DNA of 64,000 nucleotides from Rhodosorus marinus CCMP1338 (taxonomy: Eukaryota > Plantae > Rhodophyta): assembly GCA_029953675.1 (NCBI GenBank), contig JAMWBK010000002.1, forward strand, positions 1,116,001-1,180,000, read 5' to 3'. Below, piece after piece: positions 48,279 through 61,736 of this stretch (the first letter of the stretch is position 1; each line of letters begins with the position of its first letter). The position numbers and the translations under genes were made by a program. Below the pieces are notes generated by a model. That model was not told the origin of the DNA, did no database searches, and saw nothing but the letters and a program-made list of their open reading frames with translations.

Positions 48279-49727
48279 ATGATGCCTGAGCGTCTTCCAA
48301 TATCGAGTATTCCGTCGCACGTGGGGCAGACTCATGAATGTGATCCGGCCAAGTACGTACTGATATGCAAACCGGCGCTTCCAAAGATGATGGGGACACT
48401 ACACCCGGCTGGGTCGCTTTATGAGAAACCTGTAAATACTGAACTGGCGAAGGCACAGCATGAAGCGTTCCGGGAGAAGATGGAATCGCACGGTGTCTCT
48501 GTGCTGGAGGTGGGTGATATCCTTCGGTATGACACGGAGGAGAATATCAACGCCAGAATCGCGTTGGAGGATTTTGCACTCAAGAGTCTAGAGTACGAGT
48601 TCGACAAGTCGTCTATGGGTGAGGCTTCATCGGATGATCTCTATTACATCGGTGAGGAGTACAAGAGGGTTACCATCGAGGGGCTAAGTGCTGAGCAATT
48701 AGTTGATATCATTCTCACAAGACCGAAAGTTACCTTGTTGAAAAGTCATCGCGATACGGGATTTACTGCCTGTTACAACTTCAAGCCTCTGGCTAACATT
48801 GTTTTCACAAGAGACCAGCAGGTAATAAGCCTCTTTCGTTATGCAGAACCTTTTTGATCGTTGTGCCACATGGAGAGCCGATCATCGCTCCCCAGGACCC
48901 TAATTCTGTTCTGCACCATGGTTTTACAGATCACCACCAGGAGAGGAATTGTGCTTGGCCGTCTTGCGAGCGAGCAGAGAGCCCATGAAGTCGACGTAAT
49001 GCAATTCTGCTTCAAGAAGCTCAACCTCGAGATTGCGGCAAGGATCCCAGCTCCAGGGACGTTGGAAGGTGGTGACTTTTTCCCGGTTGGTGAGGACTTG
49101 AGCATCTGTGGTATTGGGTTGAGGACGAACCAGGAGGCTATAGACTATATGCTGTCGAACAAGTTGTTTGGAACGAGAAGAGTGGCTATTATCCGAGACG
49201 AATTTGACTGCTGTCAAGATCGACTTCACCTGGATACAGTCTTCAACATTTTGACACCGAGCTTCTGCGTAGCGTGGGAGAGAATGCTCGGAGACTCGAG
49301 CAAGGTGAAGAGAATAGTAGATGAGTATGTACTGGGCCCGAACAGTCACGAATATGAGAAGGTAAGCCAGAGAAAAAGACCCTAAACGACGTGCGGAAGA
49401 GACGTTGTAGACCGGACAACTAAGACGGCATTTTCTTCCAAAACTCTCTCCAATCGCCAGAAAATCGAAGGGATGGAATTCTCGGCGTATCTACAGGAGA
49501 ATGGATTCACCATAATTCCAGTTCGTGACAAGGATCAACTGCAGTACGGATGCAACAGCCTGAGCCTGGGGAACGGAAGAATTTTGGCTGTGAATGAGAA
49601 GGTTGCCAGAGAGATAGTGCGGACACCCAATTTTGATGGAACTATTGACCTAGTTGATTTTTCAGCGATCACTGCTATGTATGGAGCAGTACATTGTGCA
49701 AGTCAGGTGATCTGCAGGGAACCATAG
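48279..49727 (+). CDS. ADI: Arginine deiminase, eukaryotic type (3 coding exons)
   Basis: GQTHECD, LHPAGSLYEKPVN, VFTRDQQ|ITT, LEGGDF, GLRT, RLHLDTVF, YGCNSL, MYGAVHCASQV. Introns follow 48820 and 49361. Confidence 0.93.
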
Positions 49728-50569: not shown

Positions 50570-51709
50570 ATGATGAGGCGTGGCTCGTTGATGGCAAAGG
50601 GTAGGTTCAGAGGTGGCGGCAGATTTATGAATGCCAATCAGTCACGGTTCGCTCTGGGATGTTTCGTGTTTGGATGTATGCTGATTGTGCTCAACCGAGC
50701 GTTTAACAAAGCTGGTGAGGTAGCGAAGGGGGAGAACAGGCCAGAAGCCGCGAATGAGATATCAGCTGGAGAGCCTCCCTCAGCAATGATTCTTGGTGAC
50801 AGCAGAACTGGAGTAGTCGTCGAGGTTGTCGGAAAACCTGTTGCTTCTCTCGAACTGGAGCGTGGGAAGCGTCCAATTGGAATTCTGATGCTGCTCCCAG
50901 GATGCCATCACACGGCCTTGGACTTCTTTCCGAAGGGACGGCTTTGCGACACCTGTATTGGCTTACCAGCAGAGACATCGATTATCAGGGTTGCAGTGGG
51001 GAAGGGTCTCTTTCCCGTGGCTGTTTCTCCAACAGGCGTCTGTTGGAACACGGAGAAGGATTCAGATGACTTGCAGCGCATATCACAAACGTTGAACGAG
51101 CTGATCGTGGGACAGTCGCTTAGCAATCTACCGCTTTTCGTGTTCGGTGCATCTTCCGGAGGTGTGATGGCATCAGTCCTTCCTAGCTTGTTCAACGTCT
51201 CGGGCTTGGTAATACAGATTGCCTCGAGCGCTTCTGAGGACCTACTCAGCCACGAACACAGTATTACTGGGAAGTACCCTCCAAGTGTCTACATGCACAT
51301 GCCACGAGACCTAGTCACAGCTGCTCGCGTAGAAGATGACCTTGAGGTGCTTGATCGCATACAGGCGCCATCGAAGGAGATTAGATTGCTTCCGAAGCAA
51401 ATCGACGAAAGTTTCTTTTCCTCGCAAGCGGAGGGAATCACTTCTGAAGAATCCAAGACAATGTTCGCCGCGCTAAAAGAAGTCGGTGTTTTGGATGCAG
51501 ACGGCAGGCTAAACTCCGACCCCAGAACGTCGAGTTGGAGGGAGACTTTGAGCAAATCGGTCCCTCGCCTGGCGCATGACGATGGATTCAGACCTGATGA
51601 ATCCCCAGTGGCGGAGCTCCTAAACATTGCCTATGCGCAACATGAGTTGTCCGCGGACGGAATTGAGCAAGCCCTGGAATTCCTTATTCTGAAGCATCGC
51701 GAGAACTAG
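50570..51709 (+). CDS. Membrane-anchored alpha/beta-hydrolase-fold protein, intronless, 379 aa
   Basis: TM segment near the N-terminus, LLPGCHH, CIGLP, nucleophile elbow VFGASSGG and late AYAQHE motif. Confidence 0.8.
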   Translation: MMRRGSLMAKGRFRGGGRFMNANQSRFALGCFVFGCMLIVLNRAFNKAGEVAKGENRPEAANEISAGEPPSAMILGDSRTGVVVEVVGKPVASLELERGKRPIGILMLLPGCHHTALDFFPKGRLCDTCIGLPAETSIIRVAVGKGLFPVAVSPTGVCWNTEKDSDDLQRISQTLNELIVGQSLSNLPLFVFGASSGGVMASVLPSLFNVSGLVIQIASSASEDLLSHEHSITGKYPPSVYMHMPRDLVTAARVEDDLEVLDRIQAPSKEIRLLPKQIDESFFSSQAEGITSEESKTMFAALKEVGVLDADGRLNSDPRTSSWRETLSKSVPRLAHDDGFRPDESPVAELLNIAYAQHELSADGIEQALEFLILKHREN

Positions 51710-52363
51710 CAAAACTCGTCTCTTCATCCTGAGCGCCTTAAGGGGTTCATCAGTCGAGGTAGACCATGCCCCTGCTTGTGAGCACCGTTGGTGTATTCTA
51801 CTTGACCCTGGTGGTCTGGCAGGGCGGATGTCAAGGGTATTCGTGTATATGTAAACGCATTCGTACAGCAAGCAAATGACTGGGCGTTGCTTTACAAAGA
51901 CAACGCCATCGTCCGCAGAGAGCACACTCAGAGGCATACCGAGAGGACTAGCTTTCGGGAGGGCTTGGCTCCGCCCTGAGGGCAATGGGCGATCATGACA
52001 TGTGACACGCACGGAGAAAGAATAGGGTGAGCCTGCGTCGTGGCCCGAACCAGATCTATTCTTCCGTCGCTTCAGATGATTCTTCTCTTTCGAGTTGTTT
52101 TTACCTCAGCCGTACCGCCGCCTCAACGACCCGGAGAAGCCCACCGATAGAGCATAGCCTCCTCACGTTCCGAAGTCGTGAGGTTGGAGTAGCAGTTCCT
52201 AGATCCATCTAGAGGAGACCCTGGCTGTTAGGGGATACCTAAGCTATCTAGTTTACATGTGACATGCTTCGATATCAATCCCAGAATTGTGGAAAAGAGC
52301 ACTCGACCTTCAGCTCTCACATTCGTTTCGAAATGAGCTAAGAATGCTCTTAGTCCTATTACC

Positions 52364-53472
52364 TTAGGGCGAGATATATCGCCCAAACGCATCGCGAAGC
52401 GCCCTGTCCAACCCATGCACAATGTTGCTGAGCCCCACCCAGTGAAGTACTTTGAACGGGAGTAGAAGGATAGGATACTGCAGTGGGAGTGGGCCCAACC
52501 TGTAATCAGTCATCGCTGACGCAACGATCCCCTCAACAACAATCCTGTCGTTCTGTGTGTGCAGATTTCTCACAATGTCAACAACTTTCTCAACCGCAAC
52601 AATCTTCGCAGGCTGAAGCGAGGCATCAGGATCGGACACTGTCAACAAAGAGTCACCAACAACCAGATCGCCTGCACGTTTTCGATTCCAGTCGCTCGTA
52701 TACACTAGGTGCGAGTGAGTCAGTCGCAACCACTGATCCTTTTGATCGCTTGCCAAGTACCTTATCGCGAGCATCTCATGCAACGCTTCGTCCCTGTCAT
52801 GCTGAACAAGAAAAACTTCCGAAAACACTCGCCTTCCGTTTTGAACAGACTCTACTCTGTCTCCGACTTTCACTTGGTCAACTCTGACACTCTTTTCCTG
52901 GCCATCTTGAAGAATCCGTACGCTTGATGATCCCCCAAAGCATACCGGATCAGTACTATAAGAGGACAGGACCGGGCCTCCCCTATGAGACACAAGGTAA
53001 ATCGTCCCGCTTTAGACCCAAGTCTTGACTTTCGTCTAGGCTATCTCTCATTTATCTGTGGATTGAACGCTTACGTAGAGCCAGTAAGCGTGAAGTTGAC
53101 CAGCATCTGGATGTCTAGTGAGGATCCATTCTGAAACTGCTTGATCTGGAAATCAAGCACGGTGTCACACTCTCCAAATACTGAGGTGCTCGACTCGCCC
53201 GGCGTAAATGCTACGGTCATGGTTGTGACTTCCTGGGTACAATTGAGCCCAGTTACTTCCAACATATTAATATCTGCCAGGACATCGCCTCCATTGGATA
53301 TCTCCTGCGTTGGAAACGGAATTGTGATCTGCTCCGGACATCCCTCTCCATTTGGGCTATCGCATGCGGAAAGCTGAAACGTATTAAACACATCGCGGTA
53401 CTGCAGTACCCCCAAACAAAGTTCCAGAATCACGAACAGAACAATCAGCCTATATACCCATCGCGTCAACAT
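52364..53472 (-). CDS. Secreted Hint (Hog-type) autoprocessing protein, 2 exons
   Basis: Signal peptide plus ~115-aa ectodomain (53073-53472) splices in phase 2 to ...DPV-CFGGSSSV, VKVGDRV, SEV, LRLTHSHLVY, AGDLVVGD, IVVEGIVAS and an amphipathic C-terminal tail. Confidence 0.9.
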
Positions 53473-53675
53473 TGTTGCCTCCCCTTAACACCCCTCTACC
53501 CCGACCCCTGGATTCGCAAACAACTCTATGCCAACTCACACAGCCACCGTTATCCACTAAAATGATAATCCTTATCATCTAGTACACGACAGAATGTTTT
53601 CCCCCATTCAAGTGCTCATCCATAACACTGCTGAATAACATCCATAGCCGAAGCAACGGTTGTTGTTTTTTTGTC

Positions 53676-53704
53676 CACCACCACCACCACCACCACCACC
53701 ACCA
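53676..53704. repeat. (CCA)n trinucleotide run upstream of the Hint gene
   Basis: ccaccaccacc... about 9 units. Confidence 0.85.

Positions 53705-55096: not shown

Positions 55097-55132
<36 letters not shown>
55097..55132. repeat. (GT)18 microsatellite upstream of CDC20
   Basis: Direct reading of sequence. Confidence 0.95.
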
Positions 55133-55386: not shown

Positions 55387-57201
55387 ATGGATCGGTACTA
55401 TGGAGGAAAAGTCCATGAAGTTGATGACTTCAACAACTTCGATGCACCCATGGAAGACTGCCCTCTCCCGAGATGGCAGAGGAAAGCCATGGACGCTGCG
55501 AGGACAGAGAATGCCATGAGCACACCCCGGAGTTCTGGAAAGACACCGCAGGTATGCGACTGCTAGTTTTTGAAGGCATTACTAGTCGCCGGAGCTTCAT
55601 TCATCACCTTACCGACCTCTTCCGGTTATTGCCATCTTCCACAGAGCGATCGATTTATTCCGAACAGAAACGCTATGGACATAAACGTGTCGAGAATGAC
55701 CCTCAACTTCGGAGACAAGGAGAACTCAACAGAAAAAGGAACCGAAGAGGCTCATCCAGAGTACAACATGGCACTCGCAAACTCTCTTCTATCGCAGGAC
55801 TCAGCCTCTGCTACGAAGATCCTTGCGTTCAAGAACAAGGCTCCTGCTCCCAAGGCGGGATACCTCAACGCCCAAAGGGTTCTCTACTCCCAGAATTCCC
55901 AGATAGGTCCAAGAAAACGTACAACGAGGAATATTCCTCAAGTTCCAGAGAGGATTCTCGACGCGCCAGATCTTCTGGACGACTTTTACCTGAACCTACT
56001 AGACTGGAATTTAGAGAATATCCTTGCGATTGCTTTGGGACAGACAGTCTACCTCTGGAACGCGACAAGTGGGAGCATTGATGAACTTTGCCAGGTATGG
56101 ACAGTCGAATCCGTGCACTTGAAAGTTCCCCACTTGGATTCTAACTGTGAGAGCGCTTCTCTTTCTACGTTTTATTTTCCGTCTGCCCTCAGATGACTGA
56201 GGACGATGAGTACATATCTTCGGTGTCTTGGATTCAGGAAGGAAACGTGCTCGCCGTTGGTACCAGCAGTGCTCAAATCCAGCTCTATGATGCGAACAGA
56301 ATGGCTCGAATCAGGACGATGGGAGGACACGCTTCTAGAGTTGGATCACTGGCATGGAATGGACCATTGCTTTCTAGCGGATCCCGGGATGCGTCCATTA
56401 TAAATCACGATGTCCGGGTGCAGAATCATCAAATCTCAACTCTTCTGTCTCATCAGCAAGAGGTACGTAGAGTAGCTCTTCCTCTACGGTTCTGCCATAG
56501 ATTGCTCATCCGCCTTTGTATTGGAAACTGAACAGGTATGCGGCTTGAAGTGGAGTCCGGATGGCACGATGTTAGCTTCCGGGGGAAACGACAATCAACT
56601 AAACATCTGGGAGGCCGGTGAGGGTAGCAACGGAGGACAGCGTCCGAAGTTCACCCTGACCGAACACACTGCTGCGGTGAAGGCTCTCGCATGGTGTCCA
56701 TGGCAGAGAGGCCTTCTAGCTTCCGGCGGAGGAACGGCAGATCGAACACTGCGCTTTTGGAACGTCAACGGATCTGGCTCATGTGTTAATTCCATCGACA
56801 CCAAATCGCAAGTCTGTTCCATTGTCTGGAATCCCAATGAGAAGGAACTCGTCACATCCCACGGATTCTCTCAGAACCAGTTGACTCTTTGGAAGTAAGG
56901 AGCTGCCCCATGCTCATCGTTATCATTGCAAGTCTAGGACTCCATTAGTTTTTTCTCAACCCCATCTTTTCTGTCTAAACCCTGCAGATATCCATCTCTT
57001 GCTAGGGTGGTGGAGCTCCCGGGACATACCTCGAGGGTCCTTCACATGGCGTTGAGTCCTGATGGTCAGACAGTAGCTTCAGCGGCTGCTGATGAAACTC
57101 TGAGATTCTGGAATGTCTTCCCAGCTTCAACGAAGGCATCGAAGAATCCATCAGCGTTGTCATCTTCGCGCAGTGTCTTGCGTGGAGTTAACATACGGTA
57201 A
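55387..57201 (+). CDS. CDC20: APC/C activator CDC20/Fizzy (multi-exon)
   Basis: C-box [34 protein letters not shown]40 repeats ([30 protein letters not shown]) and C-terminal IR tail (NIR*). Confidence 0.97.
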
Positions 57202-60249: not shown

Positions 60250-61736
60250 CTAATCCTCAAAGCCCATTTGTAGGTCACCAATATCATGGATCTCGTCGTT
60301 GTCATCATTGTCGTTGCTCTTAGTCATTGTATAAGCGCGGTTGCCTATAGGGGCAGGTTGTGGTCTGGAACTATCGCTCGTTGCTAGGTAATCATCACTC
60401 GTCCATATGCCAGCCTGGCCGCCTAGTCCACCTGCCCATGGTTGATTTACTCCTCCCCCGGCAAGCCGACTGGGGAGGCTGTGCTCGGTGATCGCTAAGA
60501 GCCGCGAGTTGCTAGGGCTTCCGCGCAACTCGTCCGCTTTCCTGTACAACTGCCTCTTGATTTCGATGCTCTGAGAGGGCTCTCGATATGCATCCGCCTC
60601 AACACGAGAGGAAGTAGATCCCAGCTCAACAGGTCTGGAAGGAGTTGGTTTGCTTGAGAATGAATGCGTGCACGCGTGTTGGTCACCAGACAGCGCAAGG
60701 TCGTCCATTTGAAAGTTCAGATCGTCCTGATCTCGGTCAAACGTGCGCCTCAGTCCCGGGTGGTGAACAGAGAAGTTATCCATGCCTTGGCCCTGCGAAA
60801 GAACGCTAAATGACGGCACGGATTGAGCCATAATCATGCTCTGCGACCTCTCGAGGTTGAGTTCCCGAGTCGGGAGTAGCTTTGACGATTCACGATCATC
60901 TGGAAGTGGCATCAGCAGTGATTCAATTATCTCGGCAGCCTTAGAAAGCGCATGACTCCCTGCAGCATCCCGCATATCGGTCTCAATAATAACATGCAGA
61001 GGCTCGCTAAACGCGTGCTCGTATCCTGGCTTTCCACGCACATCGTTTTCCTTCTCCTTCCGAATTGATCCTTTGCCTCTAATCATTATTCTGCACCCAG
61101 TCTCTTTCTCTAGATGCTTCAGGGTTGCCCCCCGTGGTCCAAGAAGTCGACCTACAAAGTTGTAGTCAGGGTATCTGTCCACAGGGATCATGAGCTTGAT
61201 GCGTTTCTTCGATGCCGAGCCGAGTCCGTTGGCAGATAGCATCCTCTGGCTCAAAGAGGTCTCAAGAAATGACTGCTGATCTGGTATCGGCAAAAAGCTC
61301 TCCTCATGCTTTGCTAACGATGACGAGGTCCGCATCAAAGATTGCATCCTGATTATCTCTGTTATTTGGGGTAGTTTCAGATGGAGTTGTATCAGCAACA
61401 ACGCTTGGGAGCTTTCCAAAACGTCAGAATATGAACGTTCAAGTTGCTCACCGGCATCCAGCAAGTTCATAACCAACGGGACATGCGCTCTCATCGGATA
61501 GAGGCGTTGTTTTTCTCTTAGAAGTTCATCCAGTTGACTGCTATACAAGCACAGCAATCAAATAAAAAATAAAAAAATGTTTCCTTAATATGAGTCCTGA
61601 TGTACGCTTTTTTGTTTTCGACAGAGCAGCAGATCTCAATCACGAGTCGACGGTGGAAGAGACGCGACCAAAAAAAAACCAAGAAAAAAGCGCCCCCAAA
61701 AAAGTTTCCTTACTCCAAAGACTGTGAACCGTCCAT
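60250..61736 (-). CDS. STAR/Quaking-family KH-domain RNA-binding protein
   Basis: LDELLREKQRL (QUA1-like), IPVDRYPDYNFVGRLLGPRGATLKHLEKETGCRIMIRGKGS, EPLHV. A 93-nt in-frame intron at 61359-61451; exon 1 MDGSQSL at 61736 is tentative. Confidence 0.9.

Follow-up and report, generated by a model that had tools for sequence, protein, structure and literature searches.

A Hog-type Hint protein with a predicted autoprocessing domain and an orphan N-terminal domain in the red alga Rhodosorus marinus

A 64,000-nucleotide stretch of the nuclear genome of Rhodosorus marinus CCMP1338 (GenBank assembly GCA_029953675.1, contig JAMWBK010000002.1, positions 1,116,001 to 1,180,000 of the forward strand; hereafter the window) encodes a protein of 338 amino acids (aa) in which a signal-peptide-like N-terminus and an orphan domain, here called the cargo, precede a Hedgehog-type (Hog) Hint domain and a short C-terminal tail. 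The tail resembles the start of the Hedgehog sterol-recognition region (SRR). On sequence grounds, we consider it probable, at roughly 0.6, that the domain carries out active Hog autoprocessing with an adduct-type resolution, the adduct most likely being a sterol. A preliminary description of this DNA had proposed a secreted, self-cleaving Hedgehog-type protein, and the sequence features it listed were all found at the positions it gave, on the minus strand.

Placement in the Hog family

The Pfam model PF01079 ("Hint module") matches the Rhodosorus protein with E=3.8e-13 (50 bits; cutoff 29.7), and the Vint model PF14623 with E=0.13 only. In a search of all PDB sequences with a profile of the Hint-plus-tail region from five red-algal proteins, Drosophila Hedgehog ranked first and inteins far below it:

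6tyy, Drosophila Hedgehog, E=9e-17
6td6_B, Drosophila Hedgehog (full length), E=3.5e-15, aligned from C258 to residue 423
1at0, Drosophila Hedgehog, E=4.2e-15
7e2i_G, human Sonic hedgehog, E=1.8e-9
Bacterial intein-like domain, E=1e-3
NrdJ-1 intein, E=1.6e-3

Foldseek, run on a low-confidence model (mean predicted local distance difference test score, pLDDT, of 42), likewise gave 6tyy and 1at0 as best matches, followed by inteins. The profile E-values, the extension of the alignment into motif K and the Foldseek ranking together assign the domain to the Hog-type Hints, as the preliminary description had it, and not to the inteins, BIL domains or Vint domains. The sequence marks of the Hog family are all present, namely motif A (C1), motif B (TxxH), motifs J and K, and the profile scores. 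Two marks of Hedgehog proper are absent: there is no Hedge domain (no Pfam match, and no relatives in 1.84e9 proteins), and the residues corresponding to D46 and C143 of Hedgehog (Hh) are His and Ala. The marks of inteins are absent as well, the domain being followed only by the tail and a stop codon, with no block G Asn-nucleophile pair.

A word-indexed search with the whole protein found only its counterpart from another R. marinus strain (P0002). A Hint-plus-tail profile added P0005, from the SRA transcriptome SRR23287148 (40% identity), and P0006 (38% identity), which comes from another red alga, Compsopogon caeruleus. A four-sequence profile further added P0007 from Gracilaria changii (E=3.1e-9), whose C-terminal portion Bürglin 2008 lists in its supplement as "rGc Hog1". 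PF01079 is present in all of these relatives, and in P0005 and P0007 the alignment reaches profile positions 182-187 of 213, inside the SRR part.

Red-algal Hog proteins with a signal peptide and a lineage-specific N-domain were described by Bürglin (2008, BMC Genomics 9:127; PMC2362128), and the Rhodosorus protein is an ordinary further red-algal Hog, already labelled as Hint-containing in public databases. Its deviations from Hedgehog had been taken as the mark of something unusual, a view that is not supported as stated. The architecture, in which a signal peptide and a lineage-specific N-domain with Cys precede a Hog domain, has been known from red algae and other protists since 2008. What we add is modest: the gene model is full-length and verified by a transcript, the subfamily is a distinct one that includes Compsopogon, and Cys has naturally given way to Ala at the residue now claimed as indispensable for Hedgehog.

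Gene structure, expression and selection

Two minus-strand open reading frames (ORFs), 53472..53071 and 52993..52364, are joined through a donor GTAAGC at 53074 and an acceptor CATAG ending at 52983 into a spliced, in-frame coding sequence of 1017 nucleotides (nt). The 338-aa product is 100% identical over its full length to the NCBI entry "hypothetical protein NDN08_007667" of R. marinus (P0001), which UniRef names "Hedgehog protein Hint domain-containing protein". Transcript contig L001 (1502 nt), from the other R. marinus strain, encodes P0002, also of 338 aa and with 82% aa identity, and shows that the orthologue is expressed in that strain. It aligns to the window as two blocks, 53613..53074 and 52978..52032, leaving out exactly the intron. 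The preliminary description had staked its proposal on the splicing of exon 53073-53472 to the Hint exon, and this two-block alignment bears the splice out; the edge of exon 1 is at 53075, 2 nt from the 53073 originally given. The gene and its parts are as follows (UTR, untranslated region; pI, isoelectric point; ARR, adduct recognition region):

52364..53472, minus strand: whole coding region (two exons, one intron) of the gene for the Hog-domain protein, 338 aa, stop codon 52366..52364
53473..53613, minus strand: 5' UTR of at least 141 nt, deduced from the orthologous transcript L001, aligned from 53613
53075..53472, minus strand: coding part of exon 1, with the signal-peptide-like N-terminus (residues 1-21) and the greater part of the cargo, ending two bases into codon 133
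52983..53074, minus strand: intron of 92 nt, GTAAGC...CATAG, phase 2, skipped in the orthologous transcript L001
52364..52982, minus strand: coding part of exon 2, with the cargo end, cleavage site, Hint domain, ARR/SRR-like tail and stop
53410..53472, minus strand: predicted signal peptide, residues 1-21 (MLTRWVYRLIVLFVILELCLG), by hydropathy and the -3/-1 rule as a heuristic, with putative cleavage after G21
52943..53409, minus strand: cargo domain, residues 22-146 (125 aa, split by the intron), 13.4 kDa, pI 4.05, a sequence orphan
52940..52945, minus strand: predicted autocleavage site V146-C147, C147 being the invariant C1 nucleophile of the Hedgehog C-terminal domain (HhC) and aligning to Drosophila Hh C258
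52514..52942, minus strand: Hint domain, residues 147-289, Pfam PF01079
52801..52799, minus strand: H194, corresponding to Hh D46
52720..52709, minus strand: T221 and H224 of TxxH (T221-H-S-H224), aligned to Hh T69 and H72
52567..52556, minus strand: N272 to T275 of the RNLHT block
52516..52514, minus strand: A289, corresponding to Hh C143
52367..52513, minus strand: ARR/SRR-like tail, residues 290-338 (about 50 aa), with the motif K-like LLLPFKVLH and an amphipathic helix
52032..52363, minus strand: 3' UTR of at least 332 nt, deduced from L001, aligned down to 52032

Word-indexed protein searches returned one Hog protein per Rhodosorus strain, more distant paralogues being possible, and tblastn with the Hog protein found no second Hint-like sequence in the 64-kb window (best E=3).

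Between the two R. marinus strains, the whole gene has a synonymous divergence (dS) of 0.33 and a ratio of nonsynonymous to synonymous divergence (dN/dS) of 0.32; by segment, dN/dS is 0.39 for the cargo, 0.36 for the Hint domain and 0.10 for the tail. Purifying selection acts on the gene, most strongly on the tail; this speaks for a specific function of the tail and against a decaying protein.

Synonymous divergence is itself uneven, with dS lower in the Hint part (0.24) than in the tail (0.62). The 3' UTR (52032-52363, minus strand) is about 83% identical in nt between the strains, about equal to the coding region. A perfect (CCA)10 microsatellite lies at 53675-53704, ~60 nt upstream of the 5' end covered by L001, in the presumed promoter region of the gene.

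Catalytic residues of the Hint domain

Eight Hog sequences were aligned: the two from Rhodosorus, P0005, P0006, Gracilaria rGc Hog1, Porphyra haitanensis rPh Hog, mouse Ihh and C. elegans wrt-4. The C1 residue (C147) and the TxxH His (H224) are invariant in all eight, and the TxxH Thr (T221) is kept in seven, with Ser in Porphyra haitanensis. The predicted cleavage junction between Val and Cys-Phe (V146-C147-F-G-G) and the THSH read as TxxH are both present. In the column of Hh D46, which holds the general base, His is found in every red-algal sequence aligned, seven in total, and in wrt-4, and Asp in Ihh only. This rules out the idea that a His at this position (H194) is peculiar to the Rhodosorus protein; as judged from the alignment, it is the normal state in this part of the Hog family. 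An engineered D46H (D303H) Hedgehog retains its structure and cholesterolysis, and accepts more sterols (PMC9163320).

The segment VRNLHT...IVVEGIVASA is present as described. Its VRNLHT, which stands where Hedgehog has YAPLT, had been read as a hint of altered chemistry; it turns out instead to belong to a conserved subfamily signature, RN[LV]HTxNDRIVV, shared by Rhodosorus, P0005 and P0006, and 8/8 aligned domains retain the Thr of Hedgehog's APLT block.

The end of motif J is another matter. This motif, the Hog counterpart of intein block G, reads HTQNDRIVVEGIVASA and aligns to LTREGTIVVNSVAASC, with the terminal Cys changed to Ala. Both Rhodosorus strains have Ala as the final residue; it is Cys in P0005, P0006, Ihh and wrt-4, Thr in Gracilaria and Griffithsia, and Asp in P. 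haitanensis. That A289 reflects a sequencing error was ruled out, since the GCG codon is the same in the genome and in the independent transcript of the other strain. Because the closest relatives keep Cys, the Ala is placed as derived within Rhodosorus. The replacement of ASC by ASA to which the preliminary description drew attention is thus real in both strains, and the Ala is specific to Rhodosorus, but loss of the Cys as such is already known, having been reported for red-algal and moss Hog domains with Ser, Thr or Asp in its place (PMC2362128). C147 is the sole Cys of the Rhodosorus Hint-tail region, so that neither an alternative thiol nor a C1-C143 disulfide is possible in this strain. 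In Sonic hedgehog, C143A and C143D abolish autoprocessing in cells, and C143 has been proposed to form a branched thioester intermediate (PMC12054796).

The C-terminal tail

Hydropathy and hydrophobic moment divide the tail into a hydrophobic segment (303-315) and a strongly amphipathic one (316-333), and AlphaFold2 places helices at 302-314 and 318-333, at low confidence (pLDDT about 44-51). A helix-loop-helix of this kind is the architecture proposed for the Hedgehog SRR (PMC9163320). The LLLPFKVLH of the tail, conserved in red algae as LLxPLKVL, aligns to LAPMRLLSTL of Drosophila Hh and FWPLRLF of mouse Ihh, that is, to motif K, the start of the SRR; within it, L305 and P308 are invariant in 5/5 red-algal sequences. 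The SRR-like amphipathic tail noted at the outset is thus recovered by both the alignment and the hydrophobic moment. Scanned against Pfam in isolation, the tail gave no match.

The N-terminus and the cargo domain

In the N-terminal MLTRWVYR-LIVLFVILELCLGVL, a hydrophobic core of 15 residues comes after two Arg, and cleavage after G21 is the only one compatible with the -3/-1 rule, applied here as a heuristic. Canonical-looking short signal peptides are found in the relatives P0005 and P0006. The signal-peptide-like N-terminus of the preliminary description is accordingly present by hydropathy and this heuristic, and its cargo of ~120 aa with four Cys, unrecognised at the sequence level, corresponds to the 125-aa segment with C37, C45, C78 and C102. 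The cargo contains 15 acidic and 2 basic residues, 27 Ser+Thr and three N-x-S/T sequons for N-glycosylation.

No Pfam family matches the cargo, even at E up to 1. A full HMMER search of 1.84 billion (1.84e9) representative proteins with a profile of the two Rhodosorus cargos returned only their own cluster and two repeat proteins, the bacterial P0003 and the 3553-aa adhesin-like P0004. Both were rejected as homologues, because their scores are sums of 7-8 short repeat matches and are regarded as chance. In the case of P0003 (829 aa), cargo residues 33-58 (53298-53375, minus strand), QLSACDSPNGEGCPEQITIP, are similar to the repeat unit LHCDDPNCEGAGESITSPD; eight matched stretches sum to E=2.8e-6, the repeat sequence is LHCDDPNCEGxGESITSPD, and the Cys spacing is C-x7-C in the Rhodosorus cargo versus C-x4-C in the repeat. 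This resemblance is probably chance inflated by the repeats.

Structure prediction and profile comparison, the checks proposed earlier for the cargo, gave no answer. AlphaFold2 reached a mean pLDDT of 29.8 with a 2-sequence alignment and 42.2 with a 5-sequence alignment, and only 22-27 over the cargo in both runs, although composition and alternating hydrophobic patterns are compatible with the beta-rich fold suggested for it. Foldseek against the PDB matched the Hint part only, the model being uninformative over the cargo, and hhalign detected no relation between the Rhodosorus cargo and the 8-Cys cargo of P0005 and P0006 (probability 0.3%). MAFFT does align a C...EGC...GGxDVxAD stretch in three of four proteins (P0006 keeps just the Cys, the Glu and AD), without statistical support.

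The cargos of P0005 (residues 23-116) and P0006 (residues 24-126) have eight aligned Cys in common, and that of P0006 has a sub-threshold Pfam match to PF11912 (Dictyostelium counting-factor-associated CfaA/B/C; E about 0.01).

In sequence terms the Rhodosorus cargo is an orphan and offers no functional clue; it has apparently either been exchanged or changed too far to be recognised, while the Hog domain remained ~40% identical. The same pattern of a replaced or diverged N-domain beside a retained Hog domain is general among Hog proteins (PMC2362128).

Proposed mechanism and alternatives

We infer the following course of events; the proposal covers secretion and cleavage as well as the nature of the nucleophile and what the cargo does. 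The signal peptide would be removed in the endoplasmic reticulum (ER), where the acidic, N-glycosylated 125-aa cargo may form two disulfides. C147, helped by T221 and H224, would attack the preceding carbonyl at V146-C147 in an N-to-S acyl shift, giving a thioester. A nucleophile, most probably a membrane sterol, would then resolve the thioester and release the cargo; this sterol may be recruited by the hydrophobic and amphipathic two-helix tail and activated by H194, which occupies the place of the Hedgehog general base. Since A289 stands in for the Cys of the branched thioester, transfer in the Rhodosorus protein would have to proceed straight from the first thioester. The released cargo would carry a C-terminal lipid and be held on the cell surface; the signalling or wall-anchoring role suggested in the preliminary description is a putative one. 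Attachment of a sterol to the cargo is plausible, and resolution by a sterol is favoured, as we infer it, by the motif K tail, the constraint on the tail, the conserved general-base His and the reported position of cholesterol as the main sterol of red seaweeds (PMC5104453).

Several points weigh against this mechanism. The alignment of the Rhodosorus protein to PF01079 ends at profile position 159 of 213. Its tail, at about 50 aa, is shorter than the Hedgehog SRR, and alignments of the tail show no counterpart of Hedgehog HWY/motif L. The residue at -1 is Val, not Gly. In both strains the residue at the Hh C143 position is Ala, which matches the inactivating C143A of Sonic hedgehog, and the Rhodosorus Hint domain could be impaired, or on a different route, owing to Ala289. 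The signal peptide was judged by a heuristic and the structure models are of low confidence (mean pLDDT 30 and 42). Finally, the literature searched yielded no biochemical demonstration that a Hog domain from outside the animals cleaves or sterylates.

The best-surviving alternative, which we regard as possible but clearly the lesser candidate, is that the Hog domain self-cleaves by hydrolysis or with a small soluble or other non-sterol nucleophile. No lipid would then be attached, the cargo would be a soluble secreted glycoprotein, and the tail would serve in membrane docking, ER/Golgi sorting or folding. The conserved C1 and TxxH would suit this chemistry, and a very acidic, glycosylation-prone cargo is what soluble matrix proteins often have. 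The tail lacks a recognisable motif L/HWY, the first helix of the Hedgehog SRR also has a sorting role (PMC9163320), and the name "adduct recognition region" was chosen because sterol transfer is unproven outside Hedgehog proper (PMC2362128). However, motif K is conserved with Hedgehog, and the general-base His conserved in red-algal Hogs, together with the tail dN/dS of 0.10, suggests more than simple hydrolysis.

It is improbable that the motif-J Cys-to-Ala change has left the Hint domain catalytically dead, with the uncleaved protein functional and the Hint fold retained as a structural or binding module. The loss of Sonic hedgehog autoprocessing in cells with C143A and C143D points that way (PMC12054796), as do the Ala (GCG) of both Rhodosorus strains where the two closest relatives have Cys and an overall dN/dS of 0.32, which reflects only moderate constraint. 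Against it, C147, T221, H224 and H194 are all kept in both strains despite 18% residue differences. Inteins and BIL domains, moreover, need no equivalent of the motif-J Cys for the first acyl shift or for N-terminal cleavage. Other red-algal and moss Hogs also lack it (Thr, Asp, Ser), so that it is not universally needed in the family (PMC2362128).

An uncleaved signal anchor, which would leave the cargo membrane-bound (type II) and let autocleavage free the Hint-tail fragment, is very improbable: the hydrophobic W5-L23 (Kyte-Doolittle window means up to 2.28), the single weak -3/-1 candidate and one long AlphaFold2 helix over residues 2-35 of a low-confidence model would fit it, but the uncharged hydrophobic core is only about 15 residues long, with Glu17 within the stretch, short signal peptides of the typical kind are seen in the relatives P0005 and P0006, and the described Hog proteins with an N-terminal hydrophobic segment are all treated as secreted (PMC2362128).

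Autoprocessing with adduct-type resolution can be drawn out into a more specific and more doubtful proposal, which we put forward tentatively: the protein may be a natural single-thioester sterylation enzyme with a His general base, ester-linking the alga's own sterol to an orphan acidic cell-surface glyco-domain.

Comparison with known systems

The closest parallels are the red-algal Hogs of Bürglin 2008 (rGc Hog1, rGj Hog, rPh/rPy Hog and rCc Hog), which share with the Rhodosorus protein a signal peptide, a lineage-specific N-domain unrelated to anything elsewhere and a Hog domain with C1, TxxH, motifs J and K and His at D46, and in which the motif-J Cys is often replaced. Rhodosorus is, however, only 24-27% identical to the Hogs of Florideophyceae and Bangiophyceae. 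It falls in a separate subfamily with P0006 and P0005 (38-40% identity; RN[LV]HTxNDRIVV), has a different cargo, and carries at motif J an Ala that lies outside the reported Ser, Thr and Asp.

With animal HhC (1AT0, 6TYY, 6TD6) it has in common the Hint fold, Cys1 at the cleavage junction, TxxH and a C-terminal position in a secreted precursor (for Rhodosorus, as predicted), as well as motif J (...T..G.IVV.GV.AS) and motif K (LAPMRLL versus LLLPFKVL). Unlike animal Hedgehog, it has no Hedge domain, has Val and not Gly at -1, His for Asp46 and Ala for Cys143, and ends in a shorter tail with no recognisable HWY/motif L. Identity is about 25%, and cholesterol transfer is putative in the Rhodosorus protein.

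The fusion of a Hog domain to an unrelated, fast-evolving secreted N-domain is also seen in nematode warthog, groundhog and quahog proteins and in choanoflagellate Hoglet, and C. elegans wrt-4 shares the His at the D46 position. The nematode Hogs differ in their N-domain and keep the motif-J Cys, and Rhodosorus is 19% identical to wrt-4. Inteins and BIL domains have the Hint fold and the first N-to-S acyl shift (predicted for Rhodosorus) in common with it. Their similarity is far weaker, at E about 1e-3 versus 1e-16. In contrast to them, the Rhodosorus domain is terminal and not inserted in a host protein, has no C-extein and no C-terminal Asn/nucleophile pair, and bears a Hedgehog-like motif J and motif K tail.

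Genomic neighbourhood

Neighbouring genes were set aside as a functional clue, as they are unrelated, of housekeeping type and uninformative in a eukaryote. The features noted on either side are as follows:

48279-49385, plus strand: two adjacent ORFs matching PF02274 (arginine deiminase/amidinotransferase) at profile positions 4-132 and 131-270, presumably parts of a single gene interrupted by a short intron or a frame change
50570-51709, plus strand: continuous ORF of 379 aa that converges on the Hog gene, matches no Pfam family at E<=0.001 and ends about 320 nt from the deduced end of the Hog 3' UTR (52032)
55097-55132: perfect (GT)18 microsatellite, intergenic, before the CDC20/Fizzy-like gene
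55473-56898, plus strand: fragments of a CDC20/Fizzy-type WD40 gene (PF24807, E=1.5e-55 for 56521-56898), housekeeping
60250-61557, minus strand: KH-domain BBP/SF1-like gene (PF22675, E=8.5e-20), housekeeping

Implications

Non-animal Hog-domain proteins are the presumed ancestors of Hedgehog autoprocessing, and the gene described here adds to them a cleanly defined, full-length, transcript-supported Hog from an early-branching unicellular red-algal lineage. It differs from two relatives at one mechanistically debated residue, with Ala in Rhodosorus and Cys in Compsopogon and P0005. According to a 2025 study, Hedgehog depends on a branched thioester formed at this Cys, and the Ala/Cys pair is therefore a natural test case for deciding between that intermediate as an ancestral step and as an animal-specific elaboration. 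Cholesterol, as the reported main sterol of red seaweeds, makes sterol transfer directly assayable. In other respects the finding is routine genome annotation; should the protein prove to be a natural sterylation enzyme, it would represent the first demonstrated protein sterylation outside animals and a natural counter-example to the indispensability of the motif-J Cys.

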